IMG/VR virus record: IMGVR_UViG_3300008110_010000 | Coordinates: 1 to 64,000 of that record | Direction: 5' to 3' (one strand) | Length of the DNA stretch: 64,000 bases | Part shown: in pieces, positions 56,852-58,046 of the stretch | Numbering within the stretch: the first letter of the stretch is position 1 | How the letters are laid out: each line of letters starts with the position of its first letter | Position numbers and translations under genes: made by a program | Notes under the pieces: generated by a model | Seen by the model: only the letters and a program-made list of their open reading frames with translations | Database searches by the model: none | What the model was told of the DNA's origin: nothing

Positions 56852-56887
56852 TATATTTGTATAAAATAGATATTCAAACGATATATA
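56852..56887 (+). promoter_or_regulatory. Promoter region of tRNA array 1
   Basis: TATATTTG (Bacteroidota TAnnTTTG -7 box) at 56852-56859 and GATATATA at 56880-56887. Confidence 0.55.
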
Positions 56888-56898
56888 GATCAATTAAC

Positions 56899-56991
56899 AT
56901 GAAAAAAGGTTTCAACATATTGCCCCTTCATAGTTCGTTATCATCTTCAACAAGAAGACCGATAACCCCTGTGGAGAATCTGGGCAATTAA
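56899..56991 (+). CDS. Attenuator leader peptide 1 (30 aa)
   Basis: MKKGFNILPLHSSLSSSTRRPITPVENLGN*; its 3' end contains the antiterminator strand. Confidence 0.75.
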   Translation: MKKGFNILPLHSSLSSSTRRPITPVENLGN

Positions 56992-57016
56992 GAAACTTAA
57001 ATTCATTTTAGTTCTA

Positions 57017-57058
57017 AAAAACCCAGATCTCCTTCAAAAGAGGTCTGGGTTTTTATTT
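57017..57058 (+). terminator. Attenuator terminator 1
   Basis: cccagatctc/gaggtctggg 10-bp stem plus tttttattt; 5' arm can alternatively pair with ggagaatctggg (56973-56984). Confidence 0.85.
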
Positions 57059-57060
57059 AG

Positions 57061-57073
57061 GGTTCTTTGACAT
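57061..57073 (+). promoter_or_regulatory. boxA-like element GGTTCTTTGACAT
   Basis: Identical 13-mer also at 63977-63989; resembles rrn boxA. Confidence 0.5.
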
Positions 57074-57086
57074 TGTGGAAAATAAC

Positions 57087-57173
57087 GGAGGCTTGGCAGA
57101 GCGGTCGAATGCGGCAGTCTTGAAAACTGCTTTACGGGTAACTGTAACCGGGGTTCGAATCCCTGAGCCTCCG
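57087..57173 (+). tRNA. tRNA-Ser (TGA)
   Basis: gcagt-cttgaaa-actgc anticodon arm, long variable arm, G73. Confidence 0.92.
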
Positions 57174-57178
57174 CAATT

Positions 57179-57251
57179 GCCTCCTTAGCTCAGCTGGTAG
57201 AGCGACGCACTTGTAATGCGTAGGTCATTGGTTCGATCCCGATAGGAGGCT
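57179..57251 (+). tRNA. tRNA-Thr (TGT)
   Basis: acgca-cttgtaa-tgcgt. Confidence 0.92.
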
Positions 57252-57322
57252 CGATACTAACGTAAAACTTGTACACTAACATAATCCTTGTTAGCGTACA
57301 AAAAGTTCGTTAGCAGTCAAAT

Positions 57323-57409
57323 AGAGAGGTGTCCGAGAGGCTGATGGAGCACGCTTGGAAAGCGTGTTTACGAGCGATCGTAACAAGGGTTCGAATCCCT
57401 TTCTCTCTG
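57323..57409 (+). tRNA. tRNA-Ser (GGA)
   Basis: cacgc-ttggaaa-gcgtg, long variable arm. Confidence 0.9.
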
Positions 57410-57414
57410 CACAT

Positions 57415-57520
57415 GCCGGTGTGGCGGAATGATGACTTGGCCAGTCATAGACGTCCCTGATCTAGAGTGGGGGTGTAACCGAAAAGGACACCGTGAAGGT
57501 AAACAACCCTTCCACCGGCA
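57415..57520 (+). ncRNA. Atypical tRNA-Leu-like RNA (probable TAG register)
   Basis: gccggtg/caccggc acceptor stem and Leu-type D arm, but a hairpin inserted in the D loop, a non-TTCGA T loop and a mismatched anticodon stem. Confidence 0.55.
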
Positions 57521-57526
57521 CCTTTT

Positions 57527-57612
57527 GCCTGGGTGTTGGAATAGGTAGACAAGACAGACTTAAAATCTGTTGGACTGCAAAGTCCGTGCGGGTTCGATTC
57601 CCGCCCCAGGTA
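57527..57612 (+). tRNA. tRNA-Leu (TAA)
   Basis: acaga-cttaaaa-tctgt, long variable arm, A73. Confidence 0.92.
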
Positions 57613-57709
57613 CAAACCAAAAACAGCGTCGAGCCACATTTTGCGTCGTTCTTGGTCTAGATCTTCTCAACGGGAGAGGTGGCCGCGACCCCGAGGAGAT
57701 CACCAAATT

Positions 57710-57783
57710 GGTCCTGTAGCTCAGTTGGATAGAGCAACTGCCTTCTAAGCAGTAGGTCATTGGTTCGAATCCAATCGGGATCA
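57710..57783 (+). tRNA. tRNA-Arg (TCT)
   Basis: actgc-cttctaa-gcagt. Confidence 0.92.
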
Positions 57784-57792
57784 CATTAAAAT

Positions 57793-57866
57793 GTTGGATG
57801 TAGCTCAGTTGGCAGAGCACTAGCTTGTGGCGCTAGATGTCGCCGGTTCGATCCCGGTCGTTCAAC
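57793..57866 (+). tRNA. tRNA-His (GTG)
   Basis: ctagc-ttgtggc-gctag; G-1:C73 pair. Confidence 0.9.
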
Positions 57867-57872
57867 CATTAT

Positions 57873-57949
57873 CGAGTAGTTCGGGAGTCAGGTTACCCGG
57901 CTTGGTTTGGGACCAAGACAACTCGCAAGTTCGAATCTTGCCTACTCGA
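57873..57949 (+). tRNA. tRNA-Pro (TGG)
   Basis: cttgg-tttggga-ccaag; cgagtag/ctactcg acceptor stem. Confidence 0.88.
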
Positions 57950-57955
57950 CAAAAA

Positions 57956-58046
57956 GGAGAGGTGCCTGAGTGGCCGAAAGGGCCGGTTTGCTAAACCGTT
58001 GTACGGACTTAAATCTGTACCGAGGGTTCGAATCCCTCCCTCTCCG
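57956..58046 (+). tRNA. tRNA-Ser (GCT)
   Basis: ttgctaa anticodon loop, long variable arm, G73. Confidence 0.9.

Follow-up and report, generated by a model that had tools for sequence, protein, structure and literature searches.

A phage with two tRNA gene arrays, each preceded by a candidate leader-peptide attenuator whose codons match the array

The closest described systems to the loci analyzed here are the leaders of enterobacterial amino-acid operons (ilvL of ilvGMEDA, thrL, trpL, hisL, leuL and pheL), in which a short open reading frame (ORF) rich in control codons is followed by an intrinsic terminator ahead of the regulated genes, the RNA can form mutually exclusive helices (1:2, 2:3 and 3:4), and the stop codon is sited so that a ribosome that finishes translation blocks the antiterminator. 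We analyzed a stretch of 64,000 nucleotides (nt; positions 1 to 64,000 of IMG/VR virus record IMGVR_UViG_3300008110_010000, hereafter the window), the initial part of a 219-kb contig from an uncultured phage, and found two units with all of these properties, each standing immediately before an array of transfer RNA (tRNA) genes. Judging from their sequences and those of their relatives, each unit is probably a ribosome-mediated transcription attenuator of the array that follows it, and the codons of each leader correspond to the tRNAs of its own array.

Several features set the two units apart from the amino-acid leaders. The operon leaders regulate biosynthetic enzymes, whereas here the regulated product would be tRNAs, which act directly on the sensor; six to eight tRNA species are addressed by each leader, mostly with one or two codons each, in place of the long single-codon runs of the amino-acid leaders; and the units have no Shine-Dalgarno (SD) sequence, a very short 5' leader and no match to an Rfam leader family (searching 56800-58100 against His, Leu, Thr, Trp and similar families returned no match at E values up to 5). 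Sensing of several amino acids by a single leader, on the other hand, is shared with ilvL and thrL, and multivalent attenuation is thus already known. The preliminary description of this locus had, to its knowledge, no precedent for multi-codon attenuation of a phage tRNA operon; with ilv and thr as precedents this does not hold for the multi-codon sensing, and it does hold for tRNAs as the regulated product, because full-text literature searches returned no earlier description of such tRNA-array attenuators. What is new is therefore the regulated product, not the attenuation logic or the multivalency.

Other systems share single aspects of the design. The pheST attenuator of E. coli (pheM leader) likewise places a component of translation under leader-peptide control by the state of one tRNA, but it controls a synthetase and senses a single amino acid, and we know of no attenuator of this type in phages. 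In T-box riboswitches, too, tRNA status decides between terminator and antiterminator; these RNAs bind uncharged tRNA directly, through a specifier codon and the T-box sequence and without a ribosome, whereas the conserved reading frame of the present units points to a ribosome. Rfam returned no T-box match, either at the gathering threshold or at E values up to 5, and we accordingly dropped both the T-box and the known leader families as candidates. Phage tRNA genes are widespread and are generally treated as merely co-expressed with their neighbors. The tRNA cluster of phage T4, which is transcribed as a polycistronic precursor, resembles the arrays here in its adjacent Ser and Thr tRNAs, its small stable RNAs and the mobile endonuclease genes nearby; to our knowledge no leader ORF or attenuator has been described for it.

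Unit 1 (the parts of both units and both arrays lie on the + strand) begins with a promoter-like motif, GATATATA, at 56880-56887, followed by leader ORF 1 at 56899-56991 (ATG at 56899, 30 codons, TAA at 56989-56991), whose control codons 8-21 occupy 56920-56961. The anti-antiterminator takes its 5' strand from region 1 (56919-56933), which pairs in the minimum-free-energy fold with region 2 (56969-56988), for which the 5' arm of the terminator is the alternative partner. The intrinsic terminator (57017-57058), made up of regions 3 and 4 with the U tract, also forms in the minimum-free-energy fold, and its stem has a 10-bp G+C core, including one G-U pair, that is lengthened by an A5/T5 tract. 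Region 2 stops 1 nt short of the stop codon, and a terminating ribosome therefore covers it. Read directly against the sequence, every coordinate that the preliminary description gave for this unit is correct, as are the positions and complementarity of the protector helix that it proposed (attgccc at 56919-56925 with gggcaat at 56982-56988) and of the antiterminator, in which ggagaatctggg (56973-56984) can pair with cccagatctcc (57022-57032) over 11 bp with one bulged A; the complementarity extends to 56973-56985 with 57021-57032. The interval 56700-58200 is identical in five IMG/VR contigs.

Promoter function of GATATATA, and with it the transcription start of both units, is something that we infer from the distribution and conservation of the motif. 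It is unchanged in all 14 leader-1 and all seven leader-2 variants described below, and it occurs nine times on the + strand of the window, with every copy no more than 52 nt upstream of a start codon or RNA gene, the transfer-messenger RNA (tmRNA) included. Sequence reading and a motif scan revealed no further promoter-like motif between the unit 1 terminator and array 1; a TTGACA at 57068-57073, 3' of the terminator, was rejected as a promoter because a properly spaced -10 element would fall within a tRNA.

Unit 2 (63658-63811), which we located when a BLAST search of the leader against the fetched loci revealed a second copy of the terminator, has the same design as unit 1. Its GATATATA motif (63658-63665) stands 11 nt from the ATG, a spacing equal to that in unit 1, and leader ORF 2 (63677-63760; 27 codons plus TAA), in which codons for Tyr, Asn, Cys, Gln, Glu and Lys abound, encodes the peptide MKTQFTYNCNQMPEQGNKGDYMDTDLG. 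Region 2 of this unit, GGATCTGGGTT (63748-63758), forms the last 11 bases of the ORF region and is exactly complementary over 11 bp to AACCCAGATCC (63784-63794), the 5' arm of the terminator (63781-63811), which like its unit 1 counterpart consists of a G+C stem and a U tract and whose arms match those of that counterpart almost exactly. Array 2 begins at 63820-63972 with Cys-GCA and Asn-GTT (both called by ARAGORN) and runs beyond the end of the window, where Glu-TTC, Lys-TTT, Tyr-GTA and Gln-TTG follow, as read from a locus that extends farther, L005 (relatives are cited by such locus numbers).

Array 1 (57087-58047) comprises Ser-TGA, Thr-TGT, Ser-GGA, Leu-TAA, Arg-TCT, His-GTG, Pro-TGG and Ser-GCT, and under standard wobble rules these tRNAs read 12 of the 14 codons at positions 8-21 of leader 1, of which array 2 reads none. 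The 16 codons cognate to array 1 have a background frequency of 0.217 in the long ORFs of the window, at which a score of 12 in 14 has a binomial p of 6e-7, and random draws of 14 background codons cover all eight tRNAs with a probability of about 1e-5. The claim that each of the eight tRNAs has a cognate codon in the run is borne out, with at least one for each; the further claim that the run as a whole mirrors the array must be narrowed, as CCC and CTT go unread. Ranked by own-array codons against all 391 ATG-initiated ORFs of 20-45 codons in the six frames of the window, leader 1 comes first (score 12, with 10 for the runner-up) and leader 2 is among the top four. A test for tRNA coverage over the whole ORF discriminates poorly among small ORFs (7/391 and 24/391 pass). 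For leader 2, array 2 reads ten of the 15 codons at positions 7-21, with all six tRNAs represented, and array 1 reads none. Both leader ORFs are thus enriched in codons that report the products they would regulate, and between the two paralogous units the contrast is complete (12/14 and 10/15 own-array control codons, and 0 cognate to the other array).

This contrast bears on the reading in which the units are true attenuators that report general translation capacity or amino-acid starvation, the codon match then being a matter of phage codon usage and not of feedback. Given the geometry of these units, read-through would follow whatever slowed the ribosome on the leader, a lack of charging would cause a stall as much as a lack of the tRNA itself, and the leader of unit 1 follows changes in its array incompletely, all of which is compatible with a general sensor. 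Codon usage would not, however, keep codons of the other array out of both control regions when both codon sets are common in phage genes (frequencies of 0.22 and 0.30), nor would it place the rare Cys codon of leader 2 only alongside a tRNA-Cys. We consider a general sensor unlikely, and the tRNA-specific attenuator the better account of the codon content.

Comparison among relatives extends the correspondence. We collected relatives through homologs of a neighboring protein of 234 amino acids (aa), through DNA patterns and through the called leader peptide, obtaining 14 distinct leader-1 variants and seven leader-2 variants. A search of 50,697 deposited phage genomes returned matches to the tRNAs only and no close DNA relative of the leader; DNA-pattern scans of viral contigs returned mostly the same phage or chance matches (the last two scans added one new locus, L149), and a query with the 40-aa leader peptide matched only two peptide clusters. 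Wherever an array follows the gene for the 23x-aa protein a leader is present, and it is missing from the five homologous loci that have no array. Identity is 86-96% for the leader where it is 67-71% for the neighboring gene.

In leader 2, codon content changes with the array. The window, with an array of Cys-Asn-Glu-Lys-Tyr-Gln, has Cys at codon 9 and Lys at codon 18; L021 and L199, with Asn-Glu-Tyr-Gln, have Phe9 and either Glu18 or Gly18; L196-198, with Asn-Glu-Tyr-Gln-Asp, have Tyr9 and Glu18; L040, with Cys-Asn-Glu-Tyr-Gln, keeps the Cys codon and has no Lys codon; and L045 and L046, whose arrays lack both tRNA-Cys and tRNA-Lys, have neither codon. The rare Cys codon is therefore found exactly where tRNA-Cys is in the array (two of the seven variants; the contrast is seen twice, separately). 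All five amino-acid differences between the window and L021 are consistent with this, in that Cys and Lys vanish along with their tRNAs and four of the five replacement residues (Phe, Glu, Glu, Tyr and Asn) belong to the L021 array. In leader 1, tRNA-Leu(TAA) and tRNA-Ser(GCT) are both missing only in L045 and L149, and only in these two of the 14 variants has TTA TTA become TCA TCA and AGT become ACT. The question posed in the preliminary description, whether leader codons track array composition, is thereby answered positively between the paralogous units, between orthologous leaders and in an unrelated bacterial locus, L075, that is described below. With this tracking at three levels, the compensatory changes in helix 2:3 and the preserved frame, the attenuation reading proposed there is supported at the level of sequence comparison.

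The reading frames themselves are under constraint. Both leader ORFs remain open throughout (leader 1 at the same length in its 14 variants, leader 2 in its seven), and the minimum numbers of changes at codon positions 1, 2 and 3 of leader 1 are 8, 10 and 20, an excess at position 3 with p = 0.011. Within codons 8-21 of leader 1 all variant changes but one are synonymous or are swaps among Ser, Thr and Leu, and the stop codon alternates between TAA and TAG at a fixed position. In leader 2 the corresponding numbers are 10, 15 and 13; the peptide sequence drifts and its composition is retained. The sole indel within either ORF is of 3 nt (in leader 2), and indels of 1, 2, 4 and 7 nt lie just outside.

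It is in light of these patterns that two other explanations can be judged. The ORFs could encode small functional proteins with an ordinary promoter and terminator, their adjacency to tRNA genes having no regulatory meaning, as would suit the conserved ORF length, the position-3 excess in leader 1 and the calling of the leader 2 ORF by the gene caller in some assemblies. A functional protein would not be expected to vary freely in sequence while holding its composition, as the leader 2 peptide does (10/15/13), and neither the absence of any hydrophobic or otherwise recognizable character in the peptide, nor the tie between the 3' end of the ORF and terminator pairing, nor a codon content that follows the arrays is accounted for in this way; we regard small proteins as highly improbable.

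The second explanation, a small structured non-coding RNA with its own terminator (a small regulatory RNA, a processing site or a 3' stabilizer of the tail-fiber mRNA), with an ORF of no significance and an array reached by unregulated leak-through or served by a promoter elsewhere, draws on the folding of the leaders. The unit 1 leader RNA folds at -62.7 kcal/mol (z = -8.1 against shuffled sequence) and the unit 2 leader has z = -5.6; both form a single long hairpin that contains helix 1:2, followed by the terminator, and in unit 1 the whole ORF lies inside the hairpin, with ATG and stop both paired. Many substitutions fall in loops or are compatible with wobble pairing, an SD sequence is absent, and tail-fiber genes lie upstream of unit 1 in an operon that has no other terminator before 57017, with none separating these genes from the leader. 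Set against this are the position-3 excess, the single in-frame indel and the fixed position of the stop codon, the presence of own-array codons in two paralogous hairpins and in a bacterial one, and the joint change of Cys, Lys and TTA codons with the arrays, none of which an incidental ORF explains; transcription from another promoter fares no better, given the lack of a promoter-like motif between terminator and array. Such an RNA is, in our estimate, quite improbable.

Pairing was counted by script on the alignment of the 14 leader-1 sequences. For the unit 1 terminator 94% of cells are paired, with three pairs altered on both sides; for the long hairpin 90% of cells are paired, with two pairs altered on both sides; and for the antiterminator 92% of cells are paired, with two-sided changes at three of 12 pairs (56982-57024, 56974-57031 and 56985-57021). 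In helix 1:2 the pair 56922-56985 covaries, being GC in three sequences, GT in five and AT in six. In L040, L046 and L149 the terminator arm changes from CCCAG to CCTAG together with a change of region 2 from CTGGG to CTAGG, and L045 is the G-U intermediate of this CCCAG/CTGGG change. In unit 2 an 8-bp core of helix 2:3 is preserved in all seven variants, and an A to G change in the terminator arm of L196 turns one 2:3 pair into a U-G wobble.

We evaluated the geometry by folding the nascent RNA with the ribosome footprint masked, codon by codon. When the A site is placed at any of codons 2-17 or 20-22 of unit 1, or 2-21 of unit 2, region 3 pairs with region 2, whereas with the A site past those codons or at the stop codon region 2 is covered and the terminator alone can form; unit 1 RNA free of a ribosome forms helix 1:2. 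The array-cognate codons occupy exactly the stretch in which stalling permits antitermination, and the non-cognate codons at the C-terminal end are tied to pairing. Each unit thus combines a leader ORF, an intrinsic terminator, helices 2:3 and 1:2 that exclude one another and a suitable geometry of stall and stop, which in unit 1 is ambiguous at codons 18-19. At the level of sequence, then, the comparison displays the parts, their alternative pairings, the codon content with its covariation with the arrays, and the constraint on the frame; that ribosomes translate the leader, and which way and how strongly the array would respond, we infer.

In the mechanism that we propose, transcription would start a few bases 5' of the leader ATG, as suggested by the conserved GATATATA, and a ribosome would load onto the nascent, almost leaderless RNA. 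When the tRNAs of the array are plentiful and charged, the ribosome would reach the stop codon and cover region 2, the 3:4 hairpin would form and transcription would stop ahead of the array. If any of these tRNAs were limiting, the ribosome would stall at control codons 8-21 of unit 1, or 7-21 of unit 2, masking region 1 and leaving region 2 free to pair with the 5' arm of the terminator once it is made, and the polymerase would enter the array. In the absence of a ribosome helices 1:2 and 3:4 would both form, giving termination. The ATG pairs with sequence some 100 nt farther downstream, and this pairing would restrict translation to the first ribosome. Because the products of the array would speed the translation of their own sensor, the circuit would constitute negative feedback on tRNA supply, acting on several tRNA species through each leader.

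Starvation or attack by an anticodon nuclease, proposed in the preliminary description as occasions on which the tRNAs become scarce, are purely speculative as triggers, and a plain feedback on tRNA supply would require fewer assumptions. Asn, Tyr, Lys, Glu and Gln tRNAs, as found in array 2, are the usual targets of anticodon nucleases. We hold as a doubtful but possible generalization that phages and bacteria use leader-peptide attenuation to match several tRNA species to demand, and that the phage sensor switches its arrays on when host defenses cut tRNAs; if it were true, the unit would be a built-in damage sensor for counter-defense, and tRNA genes would form a previously unrecognized class of attenuator-controlled genes. 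A sensor that operates codon by codon would show a phage gauging which tRNAs are limiting and making them on demand, and would bring genes of a new class under a long-established mechanism, giving one of the few examples of a regulated product that feeds directly back on its sensor. The leader sequence predicts the tRNAs to which each array should respond, and there is a readable genomic signature with which to find more examples.

A number of observations weigh against the attenuator interpretation. Support for the model is entirely computational, and this includes the assignment of the promoter and transcription start of the units. The covarying antiterminator pairs come from one clade of close relatives and represent few independent events, and for unit 1 stalls at codons 18-19 the simple folding model gives helix 1:2, not 2:3. 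Not every codon fits: CCC and CTT of leader 1 are outside the decoding range of array 1, and leader 2 contains Met, Asp and Gly codons for which the array 2 of the window has no matching tRNA. Tracking in unit 1 is, on the sequences compared, incomplete, with four counter-examples, in that TTA is retained in L017 without tRNA-Leu(TAA), AGC in L040 without tRNA-Ser(GCT), ACA and TCT in L036 without tRNA-Thr and tRNA-Ser(GGA), and Thr codons in L149 without tRNA-Thr; several of the array losses in unit 1 adjoin inserted endonuclease-like genes and may therefore be recent. In L012 and L013 the terminator and the first tRNA are separated by a gene that has a promoter-like motif of its own, an arrangement that would bypass the attenuator. 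Finally, the leader ATG has no SD sequence and in most variants would lie within 0-5 nt of the 5' end that is predicted; an SD-like motif is found at only five of the 63 long ORFs of the window, however, so that the missing SD is no argument against translation.

One bacterial locus carries the same design. When bacterial genomes were scanned for the terminator, 82 loci were returned, nearly all of them ordinary terminators, many directly after host tRNAs in Bacteroidota, and only L075 has the leader design. This locus (contig JAJDCR010000066.1, labeled as a metagenome-assembled genome of Planctomycetota; about 233-390 in locus coordinates, - strand) contains a 33-codon ORF with 12 Ser codons within 14 consecutive positions, followed by the same terminator and then by at least three tRNA-Ser genes. 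The Ser codons are a mixture of TCA, TCC, AGC and AGT, so that selection acts on serine and not on a nucleotide repeat, and the tRNAs are distant from those of the phage. The tRNA operons of some bacteria may likewise be under leader-peptide attenuation, and the tRNA-Ser case of L075 suggests that the principle is not limited to phages. Also on this contig are genes for a histidine kinase, a PP2C phosphatase and a TPR-CHAT protein.

Many Bacteroidota genomes (L076, L087, L113, L119, L063 and others) contain further copies of the terminator (AACCCAGATC..GGTCTGGGTT), often right after host tRNA genes. Taken together with the paucity of SD sequences at start codons (5/63), its recurrence hints at a Bacteroidota host for the phage; PHROG searches with large proteins of the window did not point to any host.

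The gene order of array 1 recurs in relatives. Its eight canonical tRNAs, with the anticodons given in the preliminary description, are all called by ARAGORN, and the Rfam tRNA model confirms seven of them but not Pro-TGG (57873-57950), which is a call by ARAGORN only. The 'Leu-like RNA' listed with them (57411-57526) is called by neither program, including ARAGORN with introns or relaxed thresholds, and it does fold as a conserved tRNA-like cloverleaf; it can be described as a tRNA-like structured spacer with a 7-bp acceptor stem and a covarying hairpin inserted in the D arm. The spacer, whose variable arm is long and whose T loop is unusual, is conserved among relatives. Just 5' of tRNA-Arg(TCT) lies a conserved two-hairpin RNA (57614-57709, about 95 nt), for which RNAalifold on six relatives predicts 31 pairs, ten with compensatory changes; it matches no Rfam family.

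Between the unit 1 terminator and the first tRNA, at 57060-57083, all leader-1 variants conserve a motif, GGGTTCTTTGACAT..TGGAAAA, which occurs again at 63975-63999, after tRNA-Asn. There it stands between tRNA-Asn and tRNA-Glu, being present in L005 and absent in the near-identical L004, like a small insertion. Endonuclease-like genes with HNH-type motifs are inserted between leader and tRNAs or within the array of relatives (L012, 1836-2498 and 3187-3627; L014, 3964-4404; L017, 3729-4190), and the insertion in L017 coincides with the loss of tRNA-Leu(TAA). One type of inserted gene encodes 220 aa and bears its own AGATATATA motif.

Elsewhere in the window, a phage-encoded tmRNA at 41782-42184 (Rfam, 79.5 bits) lies 20 nt past a GATATATA motif, and a similar motif precedes tRNA-Met at 43848 by 30 nt; a leader ORF is absent in both cases. 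The phage also appears to carry a large auxiliary metabolic module, with several radical-SAM-like proteins, a dehydrogenase and glycosyltransferase-like genes at 27901-31494 and 45510-47693.

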